Part shown: positions 1-58,091 of the stretch, one piece after another | Layout of the letters: each line of letters begins with the position of its first letter | How positions within the stretch are numbered: position 1 is the stretch's first letter | Assembly: GCA_964019335.1 (NCBI GenBank) | Contig: OZ025690.1 | Span: 1 to 64,000, forward strand | From: Diplonema japonicum | Taxonomy: Eukaryota; Protista; Euglenozoa: Diplonemea | Direction: 5' to 3' | Length of the DNA stretch: 64,000 nt | Position numbers and translations under genes: made by a program | Notes under the pieces: model-generated | Database searches by the model: none | The model's input: the letters and a program-made list of their open reading frames with translations, nothing else | Told to the model about the DNA's origin: nothing

Positions 1-560
1 CTTCTTATCCTCCTTCTGGGAGGAAACAAAGGGGGGGGAATCCACTTGGGGGGGGTTTGCAAGGGGGGGATTTACAAGAGGGGGGACAGATAAACCATAA
101 ATAGAAGAAGCAGAGGAAGGGGCGCTACCCTCTCTCGGGAGTGCACCCTTCCCTTTTTTTTTTTCTTATCCTCCTCCTGGGAGGGAACAAAGGGGGGGGG
201 ATCTACAAGGGGGGGGTTTACAAGGGGGGAATTTACAAGAGGGGGGACAGATAAACAAGAGAAAGAAGAAAAAGAAGAAGCGGAGGAAGGGGGGGAGTTT
301 ACAAGAGGGGAGACAGATAATCCAGAGATAGAAGAAGCAGAGGAAGGGGCGCTACCCTCTCTCGGGAGTGCACCCTTACCTATTTTTTTCTTGTCCTCCC
401 CCTGGGAAGAAACAAAGGGGGGGGGAATCTACAATGGGGGGGTTTACAAGGGGGGAATTTACAAGAGGGGGGACAGATAAACAAGAGAAAGAAGAACAAG
501 AAGAAGCGGAGGAAGGGGGGGAAGGGGCGCCTCCCTCTCTCGGGGACACCTCCTTCGCAC
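1..560. repeat. Degenerate tandem repeat, about three copies of a ~160-225 bp G/A-rich unit
   Basis: The blocks CTGGGAGGAAACAAAGGGGGGG...TTTACAAGAGGGGGGACAGATAAAC...CCCTCTCTCGGG recur near 16, 177 and 403, with internal sub-duplications. Confidence 0.8.
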
Positions 561-1424
561 TCTCTTTCCTTCTCCCCACAAACACAGTATTTTTTTTTTC
601 TATTTCCTCCACAGAGGACACAGAGGGGGAGGGGAGGGGCACGGGGCAGCCAACCGTCCGCAGGGTGATCGACACCCTGGAGCCCGAAGAACACCCTTCG
701 GGGATGTGGTGGGTCCATTCGTAGCGGGCCTCACCCTCCAGAATGGCCCAGGTGAAGGGAGGCACCAGGTACTTCGATACCCTGGACCCCTTCTTCAGGA
801 CCATCGTGGTCTCTGCGCCGTACGAGAGGATGAGGACCACTGGTCCCAACCTCACGTCGTCGGTGTGGTGGGCGATTCCACACCCAGGCTCGTATCGATT
901 TACGAGCACCTGGTCTGGGGTGATCCCCAGCCCCGCTGCGGTGGCCACCTCCGCCACCCAACCGGCCCCCTCTGGGATCGGGGTGGTGCGGCGCACTTTG
1001 GCACGGGCACCCACCCACCTGAAGCCAAATTGGAGGGTTTCCCTCCCTTTGTTCCCCGAAATGGACTCCCACCCCCCCGAGAGCAAGGTCTCTGGGTGGG
1101 TGGGAGCTGGGCCTGTTCTTAAGCCCGGGGGGTGGTCCCCTCCCGTACCCACCCTCCTTCTTTCTTTTTTTCCCCCCTCTCAGTCTTCAGGCGGGTGGCG
1201 GTGGCGGCTGCGGAATCGGGAGCGGGCGCGCTGGCTGCGGGTGGTTCTATTTTTTTATGTTTTTTATTATTTTTTACGACATCTAGAGGGGATCTAAGGG
1301 GAGGGGAGGGGTCATACTGCCCGGCCAGATTTCGGTCTGGTCGGGTGGTCGGCTTGGTCGGCGTCTCTCGTAGGCGTTCCTCCTGCGGGCGGCGGTCTCC
1401 GACGACGTTTCGTCTAGGGTCCAT
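376..1424 (-). CDS. SL-headed ORF with an AlkB-family 2OG-Fe(II) dioxygenase domain; probably one frameshift between the 1424-1119 and 1152-376 frames
   Basis: Motifs VNRYEPG-GIAHHTD (NxY, HxD), LSYGAETTM, WTHHIP (distal His) and RVSITLR (RxxxxxR). The upstream MDPRR ORF begins 141 nt after an SL exon and changes frame in a homopolymer-rich stretch near 1150-1180. Confidence 0.8.
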
Positions 1425-1565
1425 TTTTATTTTTTTTTTTTTTGTGTTGAGGGGGGAGGGGATCCTTTGCTAAACGGCAGGCGGGCCGGGCCGAAACAAC
1501 CCCCCCAGACGACGACGAACGGACACCGAGCGGACGCAGCAGGCACCAACAAAAACACAGACGAC

Positions 1566-1604
1566 CAATAAAGTACAGAAACTGTAGCTTTAGAATCGTT
1601 GGTT
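1566..1604 (-). ncRNA. Spliced-leader exon copy 1 (39 nt, followed by GT)
   Basis: Reverse complement reads AACCAACGATTCTAAAGCTACAGTTTCTGTACTTTATTG|GTCGT, matching the euglenozoan/diplonemid SL consensus ending CAGTTTCTGTACTTTATTG. It may be a retroposed copy rather than a functional SL RNA gene. Confidence 0.9.
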
Positions 1605-2002
1605 TTTTTGGCAAATAACAATGGACCCACCCGTGCGAAACTAGGGGGAGAGGATATCGGGGTGCACGGCGGAGTGAACAAGGGACGGGAAAGGCTTTTT
1701 TTATTTACTTTCGTTCTTTCTCGTTCACTGGGAACCAAGGAGAGGTAGGGGGGGAAAAAGGTGAAAAGAAGTTCAAGAAAGTTGGGGGGGGTGGGAGGGC
1801 TATCGAAACTTGAGAGGAAGAGATGGAGGAGGGAAAAAGAATTAATTAATTTTTTTTTTTTTTTAAAACCTAGAACCCATATCAAACAATCTTTTTCATT
1901 TTCTTTCTTTTAAACTTTTAAACTAGGAAGATTAAAAATTTTAAGATAGAAAGAAAAATAAGAAAAAGAAACAACAAAAAAAAAAAAAAAAATTTTTTTT
2001 TT

Positions 2003-2229
2003 AAAAAGGGGGACTTGAGAAAATAAATAAAAAGGGGGACTTGAGAAAATAAATAAAAAGGGGGACTTGAGAAAATAAATAAAAAGGGGGACTTGAGAAA
2101 ATAAATAAAAAGGGGGACTTGAGAAAATAAATAAAAAGGGGGACTTGAGAAAATAAATAAAAAGGGGGACTTGAGAAAATAAATAAAAAGGGGGACTTGA
2201 GAAAATAAATAAAAAGGGGGACTTGAGAA
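2003..2229. repeat. Perfect 26-bp minisatellite, about 8.7 copies
   Basis: Unit AAAAAGGGGGACTTGAGAAAATAAAT; ACTTGAG starts at 2013, 2039, ... 2221 with period 26. Confidence 0.97.
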
Positions 2230-2257
2230 TGTTTTTTTTTTTTTTTTTTTCTTCAAA

Positions 2258-2415
2258 AGACACACAAGGCACACAGGCACAGACGCAAACACACGCACGC
2301 ACACAGACACATACACAGACCACGCACGCGCACAGACACACCACGCAGATAAATGCAAGCACACAGACCCATACACGCACCCGCACAGACACACACACAG
2401 ACACGCACACCCACA
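2258..2415. repeat. Degenerate (CA)n microsatellite
   Basis: Run of ACAC/GCAC/AGAC variants. Confidence 0.85.
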
Positions 2416-2455
2416 ATTCTAAAAAACCAAGTGATTGCTTTATTTCTCGTGCGGG

Positions 2456-2760
2456 TTAAACCCACCCGTCAGCGAACAAGCTGTAGAAGGAAAACTTCTA
2501 GTTAAACCAAAAATAAAAATAAAAAGGAGTCAACTTAAAGCCATCAGCAAACAAGCTGTAGGAAAACTTGTAGTTAAACCAAAGATAAAAATAAAAATAA
2601 AAGAGAATCAACTTAAAACCATCAGCAAGCAAGCTGTAGAAGGAAAACTTCTAGTTAAACCATAAGATAAAAAATAAAAAAGAATCACTCAAAACCATCA
2701 GCAAACAAGCTGTAGAAGGAAAACCCCTAGTTAAACCAAAAAGAAAAGAAACGGAAACCC
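2456..2760. repeat. ~76-bp tandem repeat, four copies
   Basis: CAAGCTGTAG...AAAAC(T/C)...TAGTTAAACC starts at 2477, 2552, 2630 and 2706. Confidence 0.92.
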
Positions 2761-2814
2761 AACAGCAAACATGTTTTAACAAAGGAACTTCAGGGGGAAA
2801 ACTCCCGGACCCCG

Positions 2815-3077
2815 TTTTTTGCAAATAACAATGGACCCAAAAGTCATAAATCTCAGTTGCGGCAGGGGCGGCTGCAGCGTTCAAGGCGGCAGGGGCGGCT
2901 GCGGCGATCGTGGTTGTGTCGGCCGTGGCTGCGGCAGGGGCGGCTGCGGCATTTGGGGCGGCAGGGTCGGCTGCGGCGTTCGACGGACGCAGCGGCAAAC
3001 CCAGGCAGAGGCGGCAGGCACCAGCAGAACACGAACGACCAATAAAGTACAGAAACTGTAGCTTTAGAATCGTTGGT
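2815..3077 (-). mobile_element. SL-headed, short-A-tailed ~260-nt non-coding unit (SINE-like)
   Basis: SL exon, then a leader homologous to the one after SL copy 1, four GCGGCAGGG(G/T)CGGCTGC repeats (plus-strand reading), and GGGTCCATTGTTATTTGC-A6. The same terminal motif directly precedes SL copy 1. Confidence 0.55.
3040..3077 (-). ncRNA. Spliced-leader exon copy 2 (38 nt, first A absent, followed by GT)
   Basis: ACCAACGATTCTAAAGCTACAGTTTCTGTACTTTATTG|GTCGT on the minus strand. Confidence 0.9.
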
Positions 3078-3084
3078 GGGGTTT

Positions 3085-3600
3085 GCGGGGTTTGCGGGTT
3101 TGCGGGTTTGCGATGGCCACGTCCATAGCCATTGGGCGGGAACCCCCCACCCCACCACGTCCGCAGGGCGCTGGATCAGCCCCGTCTTCTCCATCGTTGC
3201 GCTCACCCCGGCCCACTGACAGTGTCTGTGGATGGTCTCCTTGTGTCGTGCCTCGCAATCCTGGCGTTGCCGCATCCCTGGGCATGGTCACCCCATACGT
3301 CCACCCCCTCAGTCTTGCACCTCGGGTCGTGGCAGCTCTCACCCTGCTTGTAGACCGGAGCCCCCAACCACCACTTGATCAGAGCCCCAAACTCGTTGTC
3401 CGACAGCTGGTTGTGGAAGTCAGGCGTCGCCGTCAACCACGCCCCCGCATAGTGCATTGACTCCGACATCAACCTCGCTCTCGAGCGTGCATCTGCTTTC
3501 GCCAAGAGGAAGCTTCTCTACCACCACGGCCAAATATCGTTGCAGCTCAAGACACAGGAGCCATCTTGTCCTGTGTAGCGGCTCAAAACCGTCCTGTGTG
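3085..3600 (-). mobile_element. Decayed CRE/SLACS/CZAR-clade non-LTR retrotransposon fragment (zinc knuckle and restriction-like endonuclease)
   Basis: Stitched across frameshifts: LQRYLAVVVEK / ARSRARLMSESMHYAGAWLTATP...LSDNEFGALIKWWLGAPV...CHDPRC...DVWGDHAQGC...RIARHD / ETIHRHCQWAGVSATME...RPADVV / MAMDVAIANP. This is the AGAWL, CCHC, RHD, E, RPAD, DV order of CRE-type endonucleases. Confidence 0.85.
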
Positions 3601-3862
3601 ACAATATAAATTCAAAGCGTCGTTTCAAGACGAATAAAGAGTAAAGAGTAAAGAGTAAAGGAAGGAGGAATTGAGACTGGGTCAAAACGGGTTTTAAACA
3701 AACAAGCAAGGGAAAATAACTTTTTTATAACTAGATGTCTTTGTTGTTCGCACAAGCAAAAAAGGTTTAAAAAAGTGGCGAAAGTTTTTTGCTCTGAACA
3801 AGTTGCATATAGTTGTAAAAACATTTTTTGAAAGATTAATATTTGTAACAAAAGATAATAAA

Positions 3863-3905
3863 TATATGAGCTGAAGGAAGTCTTTGTGAGACGCTCCCTT
3901 GTTCT
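3863..3905 (-). repeat. 43-bp dispersed repeat matching the end of the element at 59058
   Basis: 40/43 identical to 59058-59100; A-rich flanks on the plus strand. Confidence 0.8.
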
Positions 3906-4007
3906 TCAAACAAATAAACAAAAAAAATAATAGTAGTAGAGAGGAGTTCATTAGTAATCAAGATATCAGGAACGTAGTTCCTCATAAGGATAATGTATTA
4001 AGATCAA

Positions 4008-4038
<31 letters not shown>

Positions 4039-4291
4039 AGTCGAGGTGAGAGCAAGAAAGGGGGGGAGAATGGCAAAAAGCAAATTATTGCTCTTAGAGA
4101 TTTTGTTCGCTTTCCTCCACGGGCTTTTCCTTTTTTTTTTCTCAAAAGCACGAGTGAACGTACGCTGTTTACCCCGTTCAGGACGAAAAATCTTTACCAA
4201 AAGAAAATGGGAAAGAGGAAAGGGACCTACCCCGTTGAGGCTAATAAGATCTGTGTTGCCACGAACACGTGCTCTCATAAGGGGGGGGACC

Positions 4292-4387
4292 GGCTATACT
4301 GGCAAGAACGGGGAAACGTTTCCGTTTCCTTAGCCGTTTCCTTATTTCAAAAAAATGCTTGGAAACGCGTTTCTTGCCAGCATAGCC
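4292..4387. mobile_element. MITE family A, short copy
   Basis: Terminal inverted repeats GGCTATACTGGCAAGAA / TTCTTGCCAGCATAGCC, internal GTTTCC repeats, followed by CTAGG; homologous to 8799-8955. Confidence 0.8.
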
Positions 4388-4627
4388 CTAGGGAGGAGGA
4401 GTCAAACAAAACTTCTTTTTTCTTTTCCTTATTTATCATGTCTGCTCGAGCTTCTTTCTTTCTTCTCTGCACATATTTCCTAAAGTAAAGGTATATTGCA
4501 TAACATGAAGGGTGGAATTTCGGGAGTTGAAATAACCAAAAATTACTTTGATCTTTTATTTTATCTTGTTCCCTCATCTTCTCCTATCCCTCTTTCACTT
4601 CTTTTATAGTAATACTCAGTTTTGAAA

Positions 4628-7600
4628 TTAGAGAACTGGCTCCACACCAGAGTGCCCGTCTGGGCAAACAGTGCTGCAACAGGCAACACCGGCGGAGGTC
4701 TGACCGCAGTCCCCAGCAGGCATACTGGGGCACCTGTCCTTGTCGGCAGACATGGTGCAGTAGTCGAGGGACCATTCCAACCCAGGTGCGGCAGTCCTGT
4801 CGTAGCTCACCTTCACGTAGTGGTCATGACCATTAGCAAGCGTGGACACAGCGGTGATGGACGTGATCTTCCCGTCCTTGAGTCTCGACAGTTGTGCTGG
4901 GCTGATGTGAACTTCGTGGCTGTGTCCGCCCCCGGACAGAAGCGTCAGGTCTGCTCCGTAGGCCTCCCACCGTGTCTCCTCCAAGATGCTCTTCAGGGCA
5001 GGGCTTTTCCCACCCACCAGAATCTCCTGGACTGCCTTAGTCTCCTTCCAGATTGTGTTACCGTACTCGTGTACAGGGAACATGGGATACCTCTGTCGCA
5101 CTCTCCCGATCCCATCGATCCCCGGGAACAGTATCCAGTGGCCAGACGCCCTCACCTCGCGCTCCTTCCCGTTCTTGTCCTCCACATAGGTGACCCCACC
5201 CGAGGTGTCCGCCGGGTCCACGTTCGTCGCATCCTTGAAGAAAGAAGCGGGTGTTTGGTAGAACAGGTTCTGTCTGCCCCCTTTGTACGGTTTGCCCTTT
5301 TGCCCGTTCCGCCCGTTTTCTGTCACTGAGTCGTAGTTCGGGTCAGATTTTGCAAAGTACTCGATGTTGTACGGGTTCCACTTCGTGAGCGGGGTGAGGT
5401 ATATAATCTCCAACGGGATGGCGTACGACCATCGCTGCTCCCAGCACTTTTTGTAGACGCATTTCCCTTTTGCCCACGCACACTTCGCCTCCACGGCCTC
5501 CCCGTCCAGCTCTGCCTTCTTCCAGTGAACATACTTGGAGCATGCGACCTTGGACTTCAATCCTCTGCATTCGGTTGTGCGATCCTTGTCGCGCTGCGAT
5601 GCTCGCTTCAGAGGGCCTTCGTCCAGCTTTGCGCACACCTTCTGCGGGTTCACCTTCTTGTGTGTGGTCTGTGCTGCGAACATGTAGTCGTTGAAGGCGC
5701 GCTTCTTCTCAGTTCGCCCCATCGCGTCTTTCTCGAGCATGGAGTAGTAGCGGCTGTATTTTGCTGTGTTCAACGCTTGACTTCCCTTGTATTCTCCACA
5801 TGTCGACCCGAAAGATGTGTCCACCAAGTCTCCGTTAGGGCCATCGAAACCAGAGACTTGCTCCATCAGCGAGTCGATGAACTCGAAGCCTGTCATTCCC
5901 TTCGGCCACGGTGCGTCTTCTTTCCACTTGCTTTCCTTAGTCGGGTTCAGGTCGAACACCGCATGTTTTGTCTTCGCTGTCATCTCACGCGTGGCAGGCT
6001 TGGAGAACCGCAGCTGTACGTGGAGATCGTTCCGCGCCCTGAAGCGCTTCGTGCTGATGTGCTGGTTCATGGGCTTGCAGCTGATGCGGTAGAACCACTG
6101 CGCGAGACGTGGCTCAAAGGTTTCATCGCCATTTTCCAACATGCTGCGGATGGCAGAAGGGAGGTACGGAAGGTTTTCTCGGTTGTTCTTCTGCCCGTTT
6201 TGGAACAGGAAGTTGTTCTTGTCGTTCAGGTCCGACCAGCTGTCTGCATCCACGTGGTGGCGTTCCGAAGCAAACGGTTCAGCGACGTCGTCGTGTGCTT
6301 CCACCCATGCCCCTTCTAGGTAGCATAGCACGGGCTTGAAGTAGTCGCGGAAATCACGATGCGTCACGTTCTGCGTATGGAAGGCGCGGAAGTACTCCCG
6401 CATCTCTGCTGCTTGCGCATTCGTGTTCCCTGCAGCCGTCACAGACGGTGGCACCTCAGGGAAGTCGATACCCTTTGCCTTCGGTGGCCATGAGGAAGTA
6501 AATTCCGTCACTGTCAGGCTGTTGTTGGGCTCTAAAAGCGAGTAGTCATTGTGCCGTGTAGTGAATTGCACTCCGTTCAAAACAGCACCGAACTCCCCCA
6601 TCCCCATAGTGTGGCGAGTGTTTGCATGATTGTGCATCCCAATAGCACCCCCCCCAGTAAAGCTGTTCGAGTGGTACGCGTGTGACCCCTGCCCGTAAGA
6701 GCGCACGAAGGTGACCCCTGACTGTCCTTGCTCGCGGACCCTTTGTTGGATTCTGGTTTCATAAGAGATCAACTGCCTTCCCATAGCGGCCACTGCCCCC
6801 TTCAGCCTGTCCACGGATGCCGAATCAGGGATCTGTCCAGGATTAGCCCCCAGCCCATAGGCAGCAGGGTCGTACAATGGACACTCTGCCATCACCTCTT
6901 CTGTGGGGTTCAGCACTTGCACTTCCAGCCTCACGTTTCTGCCCCATCCCTTTGGCATCGAGCTCACCACTCCGAACGGCGTCACCGTATTGTCCCAGCA
7001 GTACTCCCTCCTGCTGGGGTCTGGTTTTCCCAAAGTTGTTGATCCAAAGTAGTGGCTTCCAACTGTGTCAAGTTCCAAGCTGAAGTTCTTGCCTGCCATT
7101 TCCAGTCCCTCGAAATCTTTCTGCCCAGCAAGCAAGTCCGCACGGTCGAAGTCACATTCTTTGAACGCTTTCTCATCTTTGAATTTCCACAAATCGATCT
7201 TGCTGGACCCACGCCAGACACCAACTCGTCCCCAAGGTAGGCATACATCGCACCATTGTACATGTTCGTTGTCCACTTGCAAACATCGTCGTTGATGGTG
7301 GGGCGTGTCGGCATCGAAGGGTTTCCACTAGAGCTCCCAGCACGGGTGGCAGTCCCTCCGACCACGCACCTGTTGTTGGCGTTGCCCGCACTCCTGTACA
7401 CGTATCGTGTCACGGGAACGTAGACGGACGTCACGTTGGGTGTGATGGTGCAATAGCCATCCCTACCAGGGGGGCCTGCGATCCCGTTCGCCAGCTGTGT
7501 CAGATTTGCCACTTCTTCTCGGAGTTGCTGGATATCGTCCTGGTGGCCATTACTTCCACCGCAGCATGTTGCTGTCACATTCTCCAACTGCAAGGTCAAG

Positions 7601-7986
7601 TTGGCGACCTGCTCTTTGAGTCCGAGCATCATTTTCTCTAGTTCGCCAAGACGGTCGAGCACCTGAGGGCTTGTTGCGCTGTTCTTCCTCGTACGCGTCC
7701 ACGTCATTCCATTGCTCCAGCTGATCATCCCTTCACCATGCCAAGGCGAGGACTTCCCACGAAAGTCTAGAGCATGCAGAAGCCCGCCCACAGGTGTCAC
7801 AACGTCGCCGTCCACGCGAACCGTGCCGTACTTCGAAGCCAGCACACAGCCTGTTGCGTCAGCTGTGCTTGTCACCGTCATCAGGGCATCCGAAGCACTG
7901 TCATGCCACTTGCCGTCGAAGTCATCGCACCCTGCAGTCACTACACTGGCAGCCATGGTGGCTAAAAGCCCCCTAAGCAACATCAT
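4628..7986 (-). CDS. Large secreted multi-domain protein (signal peptide, coiled coil, phytocyanin/cupredoxin-like segment, uncharacterised conserved domain, HxH motifs) with a 1-nt frameshift near 7218
   Basis: Hydrophobic N-terminus MMLLRGLLATMAASVVTA. Restoring one T at ~7218 joins the two long ORFs as LGDELVFWRGSSKIDLWKFKDEKAFKECDF...GSHYF. Later motifs FTTRHNDY, YAIPLEIIYLTPL, RQRYPMFPVH, GHSH, GHDH. Confidence 0.75.
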
Positions 7987-8798
7987 CGTTATGAAACTGT
8001 GAAGCTTGGGATGCAAAAAAAGTAATGGAAGAAAGAATATAACCCATGTCAAAGTACTTGATCTTCTTAGAGAGGAAAAAGGGAAACATGGTCCGAGACC
8101 TGCCGGTGACCAGTCGGCTTGAAGTGCCATCCCGCAGTTCCATTGTCTGACCTGTATTACTAACTGAAATGACCTTCATGTCAGGGAGTTGATTGTCACC
8201 ATGAAGAGCGGGCACACGAAGTTCGCGTTCGCTTTCGAGGCGCAGGGTACCCAATCACACAGCAGTCCTCCAGGGGCTGACCGTCACGGTGTCTTCCCTC
8301 CTGCACCCCCGAGAGCTTCCAGCACCTCGCCCGCCTTTTCCGCAATGGGGTCCGCCACGGCCCCCTGAAGGCATCTACCGTGTCCCCCTGCGACGTGGAC
8401 CCGTTGCGAAAGAAATATGAACGTTCGTTCAAAAAGATAAGTAAGGTGTCAGCTTGACCAAGACGAAGAAATAGGAGAAGTCAGAGTACAACTAGGGGAT
8501 TCGTGAGAAAGGAATGAACACATTCGGGATAACAACCCTGACACCCTGACAAAGTTGGCAATCCACAGTCATCATATGATAATATCCCATTATAGACTCA
8601 AAAAGGCTGCGTCGGCAGGTCGGGTTTGTTGTAGTTGCAATCAGGTTCCGGTCTTCAAGGAACAAGGTGTACCTCAAGTTCATCAACTGTACTCTGGTTT
8701 CGATCACGTGGCTCGTCCATAAGCTGCTCATACGATATTCAACAATAGGTCTGTGAACCTTTGCTCCATTTTTTCTTTTTCTGTGTTGCCAGCTGCCC

Positions 8799-57255: not shown

Positions 57256-58091
57256 GGTGTCTTTGAAGGGAACCTGCAGTATGTGACAGGATCGCCTAAC
57301 ACAATCAACTCATCTAGTGTTTGATTCCTTCTGTCGTGGTACAGTTCAGTGCCACCCACGAATGGCTTGGTGCAGATGATTTTGAATCAAGGCCGAGCGC
57401 CTTGAGACGAGAGGAGAGTTGGACCGGTCCGAGGGATTGAAGTAGATACCAGCCGTGAGCTGGTCGGGAATCACGTTGTGGATCTGCTGGGCTCCCCAGT
57501 GTTGCTGTACCAGTGCTAAGGGGGGTTTAACAGGGGCAGGTCTGCTCGTCCAATTGGTGGCCGCCCCGAGTATGTCTTGGCGCTTCCTCTTGTCTCCTTC
57601 CTCGGGGGTGTCCTCTTCGATTGTTGCTGCTGCTGCTGGGCCAGCTGTCCCTTCGATTGTTGCTGCTGGCGCGGTTGCCCCTTTGCCTGTTGGTCTTGGA
57701 GCTGCTGCTGAAATTGCTGGGGTTGACCCTTCGGTTGGTATGGCTGTGGAGGTTGTTGCGAGCAAATGACTGTTGGGGTTGCGACGGGGGCTGGTATTGT
57801 TGCAGAGCTGGCTGTTGCTGCGGGGTGGGCTGTTGAGGGGAGGCCTGTGCCTTTTCGACCAACTGTAAGATGCAGCTTAGTGTGGTCAGCACCAGGCTCC
57901 TGTTTTCCTCGGAGAGGTCGCCCGCTAGCAGGCTCTGTGCCCTCTGGACCAGATGATGGGGGTCCATGGTCGCGTCGGTGAGGGGGGAATAAAACTGACT
58001 TTGTAAAAACTCGCTCTCTTGTCTACCGATCACTATAAACTCTTGTACTCCTACAATAAAGTACAGAAACTGTAGCTTTAGAATCGTTGGT
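57256..58091 (-). mobile_element. SL-headed retroposed element/retrocopy in a T tract, with two overlapping ORFs
   Basis: T run, SL, 86-nt leader, ORF MDPHH... (57967-57527) overlapping a second frame ending at 57346, defined terminus, T run. Confidence 0.7.
58054..58091 (-). ncRNA. Spliced-leader exon copy 3 (38 nt, not followed by GT)
   Basis: ACCAACGATTCTAAAGCTACAGTTTCTGTACTTTATTG|TAGGAG, the form expected of a mature trans-spliced junction. Confidence 0.9.

Follow-up and report, generated by a model that had tools for sequence, protein, structure and literature searches.

Non-LTR retrotransposons that encode a restriction-like endonuclease include the CRE clade, in which SLACS, CRE1/2 and CZAR occupy spliced-leader (SL) genes while MoTeR1, FoTeR and Cnl1 are found at telomeres. 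Briefly, these elements have one large ORF in which the reverse transcriptase (RT) is followed by a CCHC knuckle and a PD-(D/E)xK endonuclease, and MoTeR and FoTeR stack in tandem at chromosome ends with their 5' ends toward the terminus (PMC12857005). The R2 element targets 28S rDNA, whereas NeSL and Utopia carry an extra N-terminal cysteine protease, which is Ulp1-like, with NeSL targeting SL genes (PMC4640811). A quite separate set of RNA-templated replicons has acquired AlkB-type 2OG-Fe(II) dioxygenases. In the Flexiviridae, an AlkB domain is followed by an OTU protease upstream of the polymerase in one replicase polyprotein (PMC544882), and viral AlkB domains repair m1A and m3C in RNA (PMC2553587), while Ty3/Gypsy LTR elements of the orchid Phalaenopsis carry an AlkB in a separate extra ORF with measured m6A demethylase activity (PMC9289625). 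Here, we describe a chromosome-end retrotransposon of Diplonema japonicum whose single giant protein joins AlkB, OTU, RT and restriction-like endonuclease domains, a combination that we could not find described in print.

The starting point was the window, a 64,000-nucleotide stretch that forms the very start of one contig of the assembly (C43:1-64000). A first-pass annotation had described, on the minus strand, a CRE/SLACS-type endonuclease remnant running into an SL exon, a repeat-rich unit of about 1.4 kb with a short A tail, and a second SL followed by a leader and an ORF with a complete AlkB catalytic set and tandem repeats. We find that this description holds, with each of these features present on that strand (Table 1), although four telomere-type octamers between the remnant and the first SL had gone unmentioned. 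A 21-nt core of the 38-nt SL sequence, ACCAACGATTCTAAAGCTACAGTTTCTGTACTTTATTG, has 3 hits in the window against 0 expected. The AlkB ORF is, however, cut off from its own start codon at 1424 by a frameshift at 1147 and stops early through another at 425. The copy in the window, with these two frameshifts and cut by the contig end, is dead, and no RT is visible only because the contig ends at base 1.

Table 1. Features at the start of contig C43. Coordinates are window positions; C22 and C24 are other contigs of the same assembly, and ORF-A is the full-length ORF of the family-A element.
Coordinates	Strand	Feature	Supporting observations
3113..3505	-	Fragment of the CCHC zinc knuckle and restriction-like endonuclease region of a different element family; frameshifted, truncated at both ends and broken inside the endonuclease domain	blastx of 3487-3236 to ORF-A residues 1781-1862 (CCHC and the start of the endonuclease), 44% identity, E=1e-12; 92% identical in DNA to a copy at the start of C22 that is truncated about 45 nt further on
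3078..3112	-	About four telomere-type octamers, (CAAACCCG)n on the minus strand; a former chromosome end now buried	TRF finds GGGTTTGC x4.1 at 3079-3112; the same octamer forms the terminal arrays of 10 of 14 contig starts and 8 of 15 contig ends sampled
3040..3077	-	Spliced-leader copy 1 (38 nt), 5' end of the non-coding unit
1604..3039	-	Body of the 1.47-kb SL-headed non-coding mosaic unit (unit 3077-1610 with its SL): family-B-type leader (3039-2981), GCC-rich repeats, 76-bp x3.7 (2469-2747), GT-rich tract, 26-bp x8.8 (2002-2229), 385-bp module and A7 tail (1609-1603; base 1603 may equally be the first A of the next SL)	No second full-length copy in the genome, but each module recurs at other subtelomeres
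1566..1603	-	Spliced-leader copy 2, first bases of the family-A element
1425..1565	-	141-nt leader that begins with GT, contains no ATG and has AG dinucleotides near its end	99-100% identical in more than 20 copies
1119..1424	-	Start codon and first ~100 codons of the element ORF, out of frame with the rest in this copy	Identical to the N-terminus of the 2,990-aa ORF; a 4-nt gap at 1147 separates them from the AlkB frame
376..1152	-	AlkB ORF as it stands in this copy (258 aa)	Reaches Pfam PF13532 above its gathering score
658..1047	-	AlkB (2OG-Fe(II) dioxygenase) domain	PF13532, E=3.5e-10; conserved catalytic residues; AF2 model and Foldseek matches (see text)
61..522	-	226-bp x2 tandem repeat encoding the 75-aa Ser/Pro-rich repeats that follow AlkB	TRF
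1..1609	-	First 1.6 kb of a 10.66-kb family-A element, cut by the end of the contig and carrying two frameshifts	99.2% identity over 1,619 columns to unit positions 19-1636 of the intact C24 copy

Intact family-A elements elsewhere in the genome are 10.66 kb long and consist of the SL, the leader, one 2,990-aa ORF, a 1.5-kb 3' UTR and poly(A). The ORF runs through AlkB, the 75-aa repeats, zinc fingers, an OTU protease (motif GDCLFRS), the RT (PF00078, E=1e-18, with YLDD at residue 1512), a CCHC knuckle plus R2-like restriction-like endonuclease and an acidic tail of approximately 900 aa. Linkage of AlkB to an RT and endonuclease, which had been set beforehand as a check together with copy number and a possible host origin, is therefore shown, with AlkB in frame with these domains. 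The AlkB is also multi-copy and at most 34% identical to any other AlkB-like sequence in the genome, so the refutation test set beforehand fails to refute. At least 147 AlkB matches exist, about 90% of them within roughly 10 kb of contig ends and pointing outward; taken together with 95 RT matches, nearly all lie near contig ends in this orientation. Contig C24 carries tandem units with a period of 10,659 bp, and RT segments are 100% identical between copies, so the system is apparently recently active. Evidence for expression is weak, with one sequencing run of unrecorded kind that behaves like RNA covering the leader and ORF at depth 4-9, against about 1e5 on the SL; the many apparent joints in one set of reads (X5) are SL-bearing mRNA contigs that hit the A-rich stretch before the ATG and are not splice forms of the element.

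The AlkB domain has the features expected of its family at the level of sequence and predicted fold. In a 50-sequence alignment, Y87, H96, D98, H148, R159, S161 and T163 are invariant and N85 and R165 are at least 90% conserved, which together cover the Fe(II) triad HxD...H and the NxY and RxSxTxR motifs for 2-oxoglutarate and substrate, and these residues are kept in families A and B and in Diplonema papillatum. The AF2 model has pLDDT 90.3 and pTM 0.86, and Foldseek matches it to ALKBH6, Ofd2, NMAD-1, ALKBH8, ABH2, ALKBH5, ALKBH3 and AlkB, all at probability 1.0. Between families A and B, the domain is under purifying selection (dN/dS 0.26 at dS 0.92). It is also fused to OTU and RT in gene models of D. 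papillatum, counted here as a second genus, including KAJ9442719.1 (2,635 aa). A search for AlkB restricted to long proteins returned nothing, but is uninformative as it depends on shared words, and two scans of JGI metagenome contigs for the AlkB module also found nothing.

With its YxDD-type RT in a single ORF, its poly(A) tail, the absence of LTRs and the presence of 5'-truncated copies, the element has the organization of a restriction-like-endonuclease non-LTR retrotransposon. The endonuclease model has pLDDT 94.9, and its top Foldseek hits are R2 proteins at probability 1.0 (TM 0.46-0.62) followed by Prp8, with C52, C55, C69, H79, E100, D113 and D129 invariant and H65 and K159 nearly invariant across 41 sequences; in the window itself only the remnant of another family is present. 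R2 is also the closest solved structure for the RT (E=4e-6), although sequence identity to R2 is only 13-17% and R2 has no AlkB or OTU. As in SLACS, CRE1/2, CZAR, MoTeR and FoTeR, the RT is followed by the order C..C..H..C..RHD..E..(K)P(A)D..D, the location and stacking at chromosome ends are as for MoTeR and FoTeR, and the host trans-splices an SL. The strict published CRE-clade motif, C[1-3]C[7-8]H[3-4]C[9-10]RHD/N[19-33]E[9-21]R/KPD[12-14]D/E, nevertheless gives no match, as the observed spacings are 2, 9, 3, 8, 19, 9 and 15, three of them off by one, with KPAD in place of KPD, and the only pointer to grouping of the RT with this clade is the automatic name SLACS on the D. papillatum homologues. 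The ORF is also 2.5 times longer, with AlkB, OTU, coding repeats and the acidic tail, and its 3' end faces the chromosome terminus, the reverse of FoTeR and MoTeR. NeSL and Utopia lack AlkB and are not telomeric, and their extra protease is not of the OTU type. The Flexiviridae share the order of AlkB and OTU before the polymerase, and the AlkB fold, but carry RdRp, helicase and methyltransferase instead of RT and endonuclease, are plant viruses, and provide no evidence of common descent of the module. In Phalaenopsis, the AlkB is of the plant ALKBH9/10 m6A-eraser type and is a recent capture in one orchid genus, while here it is fused to the RT polyprotein and shared by several families and two genera.

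The relationship of the element to the SL differs from that of SLACS, CRE1, CZAR and NeSL-1, which insert at a fixed site inside the SL exon and are flanked by the two parts of the SL gene. Here, a complete SL heads each element as its own 5' end, and is preceded by poly(A) of another element, by telomere octamers or by unique DNA, with poly(A) followed directly by base 1 of the next SL. At 41 loci the identical junction SL|GTCGTC follows TG and not AG, and the SL is therefore mostly copied from the parent element rather than newly trans-spliced. Among variant joints, 3 follow AG and 4 follow CG or TG, but all end in G, such that microhomology with the SL 3' end explains them as well as trans-splicing at alternative acceptor sites. 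Telomere-repeat-targeting retrotransposons (MoTeR, FoTeR, TRAS and SART) have insertions flanked by telomere repeats in a fixed orientation. Here, at least 6 SL 5' junctions abut octamers, including that at window position 3078, and the orientation of the elements is fixed, although no poly(A)|octamer 3' junction was seen in the genome sequence read, and the terminal octamer arrays join element bodies at arbitrary points. The elements do not replace telomerase repeats in the manner of HeT-A, TART and TAHRE, which form the terminus with their 3' ends toward the centromere, as octamer arrays cap most sampled ends, a TERT RNA-binding-domain hit above the Pfam cut-off lies at C41:533974 (another contig of the assembly), and the 3' ends of the elements face outward. 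Canonical TTAGGG repeats are absent from the assembly, and a literature search for the octamer returned only chance primer matches.

We therefore read the stretch, with high confidence, as the inner edge of a stack of retrotransposon copies at an unfinished chromosome end, in which a broken endonuclease fragment of one family, capped by octamers as an old healed end, is followed outward by the non-coding SL-headed retro-unit and then by the beginning of a family-A element. What the analysis establishes is that AlkB is an integral, selected module of this non-LTR retrotransposon, that the elements lie head to tail at chromosome ends with the sense strand pointing outward, and that the SL is their own 5' terminus. 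The remainder is inference, namely that the endonuclease nicks the G-rich octamer strand, whose TTT-3' can pair with the poly(A) tail, and so primes reverse transcription, a targeting step that rests on 5' junctions only; that template jumps by the RT, or insertion at the 5' edge of a resident copy, give the direct poly(A)|SL joints; that AlkB has demethylase activity and acts in cis on the element's own RNA or RNP, removing base methyl groups that block the RT or flag the RNA for host control; and that OTU processes the polyprotein or removes ubiquitin. The interpretation offered in the first-pass annotation is thus partly supported, since the AlkB ORF is the 5' part of an SL-headed retroelement, while an association with SL RNA genes is not supported and the proposed demethylation of the SL is weakened.

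Which methylated base AlkB would act on can only be approached by analogy. A tentative possibility is repair of alkylation damage (m1A, m3C) in the long RNA template or cDNA, as shown for plant flexivirus AlkB domains, given the shared order of AlkB, OTU and polymerase, and with beta-flexivirus and closterovirus replicases and picorna-like polyproteins among the viral fold matches, although sequence identity to those viral domains is 14-26%. Somewhat less likely is that AlkB is an m6A eraser shielding the element's RNA from host epitranscriptomic control of transposons, as proposed for the orchid AlkB; ALKBH5 is among the structural matches, but the best sequence and fold matches are ALKBH8, ALKBH6, Ofd2 and small AlkBs of unknown origin rather than the ALKBH5/9/10 or FTO type.

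The mechanism first proposed, in which AlkB strips cap-4-type base methylations (m6,6A, m3U) from the SL so that the RT can copy the RNA to its first base, appears unlikely. AlkB-family enzymes can remove m1A, m3C and m3U-type methyls, cap-4 bases stop primer extension in trypanosomatids, and full-length copies keep the SL down to its first or second base. Against this, the shared SL|GTCGTC joint indicates an SL inherited from the parental DNA copy rather than added afresh from modified SL RNA, and 20 interior SL-headed units, as well as the one at window position 58090, keep a complete SL with no AlkB match nearby, although mobilization in trans is not excluded. A comparison of coordinates gave no consistent link between the interior SL-headed units and an interior 1,640-aa RT family. 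Cap-4 is also not established for diplonemids, and the closest folds (ALKBH6, Ofd2 and ALKBH8) are not a known m3U or m6,6A eraser. Equally unlikely, though not excluded, is a broader reading in which diplonemids harbour an old lineage of chromosome-end retrotransposons with their own RNA-demethylase and deubiquitinase pair, the same countermeasure pair that plant flexiviruses evolved independently; in this view AlkB would be needed to make a full-length cDNA of an SL-capped, base-methylated RNA, and the elements would also serve as the buffer zone of telomeres whose C-rich strand, unusually, runs 5'->3' to the end.

An SL RNA gene array with SLACS/CRE-type insertions is very unlikely; although the SL exon is followed by GT, as at the SL RNA 5' splice site, and the D. 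papillatum homologues bear the name SLACS, there is no spacer or promoter between the poly(A) and base 1 of the next SL, the upstream sequence varies, an Rfam scan of 1-8000 found no SL RNA family or other credible RNA, and no true SL RNA gene was found among the 100 of 214 SL hits that were inspected. An ordinary or processed host ALKBH gene trapped among subtelomeric repeats, as the solitary ORF in the window might suggest, is refuted by its 97% identity to copies in frame within 2,800-3,005-aa RT-bearing ORFs, with other AlkB-like sequences in the genome only 31-34% identical.

The elements shape nearly every chromosome end of this genome, and the fusion of AlkB to the RT polyprotein of a non-LTR element provides a natural, multi-copy system in which to ask what RNA or DNA methylation does to retrotransposition. 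The recurrence of the AlkB-then-OTU arrangement of flexivirus replicases points to a common pressure on RNA-templated replicons. The fusion also changes the reading of the dozen AlkB-type genes reported for D. papillatum as host regulators (PMC10161547), as at least 12 gene models of this AlkB type fall in clusters with RT-bearing models named SLACS.

The window forms the first 64 kb of its contig (C43, positions 1-64000) in a 62.5-Mb assembly of 132 contigs, and the features described here therefore sit at the outermost bases of an unfinished chromosome end, all of them on the minus strand and reading toward base 1. The arrangement described in the first-pass annotation, namely an endonuclease remnant followed by two spliced-leader (SL) copies with a repeat-rich unit between them and then an AlkB reading frame, is present as claimed, although that annotation did not note the telomere-type octamers lying between the remnant and the first SL. 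The 38-nt SL, ACCAACGATTCTAAAGCTACAGTTTCTGTACTTTATTG, resembles the Diplonema SL as reportedly described by Sturm et al. 2001 (cited in PMC10161547). In one sequencing run that behaves like RNA (X5), it has a depth near 1e5 against 4-14 for flanking sequence, and is joined to hundreds of different sequences, as is expected of a trans-spliced leader. These features of the SL, and the nearest protein relatives of the element, which are from Diplonema papillatum, point to a diplonemid. The two SL copies are each followed by GT and by homologous leaders about 85% alike, while the 1.47-kb unit that the first of them heads has no second full-length copy in the genome, being instead a mosaic of modules that occur separately at other subtelomeres.

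Coordinates of the features in the window, in the full-length element protein and at other loci of the assembly
Sequence	Position	Strand	Feature	Observation
Window	4628-7282	-	First host-like gene inside the retroelement stack	884-aa ORF with no significant Pfam domain
Window	3487-3236	-	Endonuclease remnant, upstream of the first SL	Aligns to the CCHC knuckle and the start of the endonuclease of the full-length element protein, 44% identity, E=1e-12; the frame-shifted continuation carries the RPAD and (A/I)DV motifs
Window	3079-3112		Telomere-type octamers	GGGTTTGC x4.1
Window	3077-3040	-	SL copy 1	38 nt
Window	3077-1610	-	1.47-kb unit	Non-coding, rich in repeats, ends in A7
Window	1609-1	-	Start of an element copy	99.2% identity to positions 19-1636 of the 10,659-bp unit on contig C24
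Window	1603-1566	-	SL copy 2	38 nt
Window	1119-1424	-	ORF	Equals the N-terminus of the element protein
Window	1147	-	4-nt gap	Relative to the intact copy
Window	425	-	Extra C	Relative to the intact copy
Window	376	-	Stop codon	Created by the two frame changes
Window	58052-58090	-	SL-headed unit of another family	Followed by a 168-aa ORF with no Pfam match
Element protein			N-terminus	MDPRRNVV...
Element protein	128-258		AlkB	PF13532
Element protein			75-aa Ser/Pro-rich tandem repeats	Follow AlkB
Element protein			Basic region and zinc fingers	Follow the repeats
Element protein	846-931		OTU protease	PF02338, catalytic GDCLFRS
Element protein	1350-1560		Reverse transcriptase (RT)	PF00078, YLDD
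Element protein	1831-1908		CCHC..RHD..E..KPAD..D module
Element protein			Acidic tail	About 900 aa
C41	533974-534300	+	Telomerase RNA-binding-domain match	PF12009, 28.4 bits, above the cut-off, in a 1,086-aa open frame
C9	7233-10859		Recombinant element copy (L023)	Family-A SL leader and N-terminus joined to a family-B AlkB domain
C20	~398.8-400.3 kb		Interior cluster	SL heads and AlkB fragments far from contig ends
C30	~333-335 kb		Interior cluster	SL heads and AlkB fragments far from contig ends

The element to which the AlkB reading frame belongs is a 10,659-bp unit, repeated head to tail on C24, which holds a single ORF of 2,990 codons encoding the domains listed in the table. The predicted structure of the C-terminal module has pLDDT 94.9, and its only significant structural matches are R2 retrotransposon proteins, followed by Prp8; across 41 homologues its Cys, His, Glu and Asp residues are invariant and its Lys nearly so. 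The copy in the window is, by contrast, a dead fragment, whose two frame changes split the ORF before it is cut off by the end of the contig. On the inner side of the retroelement stack, about 1 kb of low-complexity DNA, including a run of about 30 C, separates the stack from the first host-like gene.

The AlkB domain has at least 147 matches in the genome and the RT has 95. Minus-strand matches lie almost all within 10 kb of a contig start (up to 41 kb in the C24 array), while plus-strand matches track the lengths of their contigs and, where that length is known, lie 2.5-7.6 kb from the end. The exceptions are the interior clusters on C20 and C30, which may be old chromosome fusions or misjoins, and inward-pointing copies on C12, C8 and C100. 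At least nine copies keep open frames of 2,700-3,005 aa. There are several families, AlkB being 97% identical within family A and 64-71% between families and the RT 56-63% identical between families, and the recombinant copy on C9 implies exchange between them. Between families A and B the AlkB domain has a dN/dS of 0.26 at a dS of 0.92 and keeps every catalytic residue, whereas other AlkB-like sequences in the genome are only 31-34% identical, so this is not a recent copy of a host gene. Four host-like AlkB loci lie at C4:861953, C90:313845, C62:280885 and C101:74814.

In a library of 1.8 billion representative proteins, no hit is better than E=8e-17. Among the few long hits are gene models of Diplonema papillatum, from which the nearest protein relatives of the element come. 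One of these, KAJ9442719.1 (2,635 aa), is named "SLACS 132 kDa protein, partial" and has AlkB, OTU and RT in the same order, and the module is therefore shared by two genera. Public D. papillatum models of the same element type (KAJ9439924.1, KAJ9446222.1 and KAJ9442719.1) are named either "tRNA (carboxymethyluridine(34)-5-O)-methyltransferase" or "SLACS 132 kDa protein", the AlkB part having apparently been read as a host ALKBH8-like gene. Among the closer AlkB relatives is also a 646-aa protein from a JGI metagenome (P0107), in which an mRNA cap guanine-N7 methyltransferase domain is fused to an AlkB domain.

The predicted structure of the AlkB domain (pLDDT 90.3) matches ALKBH6, Ofd2, NMAD-1, ALKBH8, ABH2, ALKBH5, ALKBH3 and E. 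coli AlkB, all at probability 1.0, while by sequence the best solved relative is the AlkB domain of ALKBH8. Among viral models it matches giant-virus oxygenases, picorna-like polyproteins, and the replicases of beta-flexiviruses and closteroviruses, matches that do not resolve the subfamily and hence the substrate.

The SL is the first base of the mobile unit. Upstream of it lie the poly(A) of another element, telomere octamers (at window 3078 and at least five other loci) or unique DNA, and as no SL gene spacer is present this is not the situation of SLACS and CRE1. The leader that follows begins with GT, has AG near its end and contains no ATG. Forty-one loci share the identical joint SL|GTCGTC, which follows TG rather than AG, so daughter copies mostly inherit the SL from the parental DNA copy rather than by canonical trans-splicing; variant joints also exist, but these do not discriminate between splicing and microhomology. 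Several other families of SL-headed units lie in chromosome interiors (20 loci, in addition to the one in the window), each starting with a complete SL joined to a different body and usually sitting just after a long T-run, with no AlkB match nearby.

A search of the assembly for TTAGGG found no arrays of this repeat. Instead, on the plus strand, 10 of 14 sampled contig starts begin with (GGGTTTGC)n and 8 of 15 sampled contig ends finish with (GCAAACCC)n, so that the C-rich strand runs 5'->3' to the terminus, the reverse of canonical telomeres. The arrays range from 0.17 to more than 1.5 kb, with a GGGGTTTGC variant on C2 and C24, and join element bodies and other sequence at arbitrary points, as healed breaks would. 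In this view, the octamers buried in the window mark such an event, in which an end that had eroded into an endonuclease domain was healed and then received the SL-headed units. The telomerase RNA-binding-domain match on C41 suggests that the genome probably encodes a TERT despite the odd telomere repeat, and the elements thus probably do not replace telomerase.

Taken together, the analysis establishes the architecture of the element, the linkage of AlkB to an RT and an endonuclease, the location and orientation of the copies, and selection on AlkB. How the element moves, in contrast, is inferred: reverse transcription would be target-primed from a nick in the G-rich octamer strand, and copies would be stacked either by template jumps of the RT, an activity of the R2 RT, or by insertion at the 5' edge of resident copies. 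It is likewise an inference that AlkB is catalytically active and acts in cis on the element's RNA, and that OTU is a processing protease or a deubiquitinase. The interpretation in the first-pass annotation, that the AlkB frame is the 5' part of an SL-associated retroelement and demethylates its RNA so that it can be reverse transcribed through the modified SL, or counters host RNA methylation, is supported only in part. For the AlkB substrate we tentatively rank the repair of damage (m1A, m3C) and the erasure of m6A about equally, and consider the proposed action on the SL cap less likely than either.

The element works like a CRE-type, restriction-like-endonuclease, site-restricted non-LTR retrotransposon, and in habit resembles MoTeR and FoTeR, but with the opposite orientation. 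It lacks the insertion into SL genes that defines SLACS-like elements and does not fit the strict published spacing of the endonuclease motif and, in the absence of a position for its RT on a tree, we file it in the restriction-like-endonuclease group, with membership of the CRE clade neither claimed nor excluded. Full-text literature searches found no paper that combines AlkB with a non-LTR retrotransposon and OTU. AlkB in a retrotransposon has one precedent, in an LTR element of orchids, and AlkB followed by OTU in a polymerase polyprotein is known in Flexiviridae.
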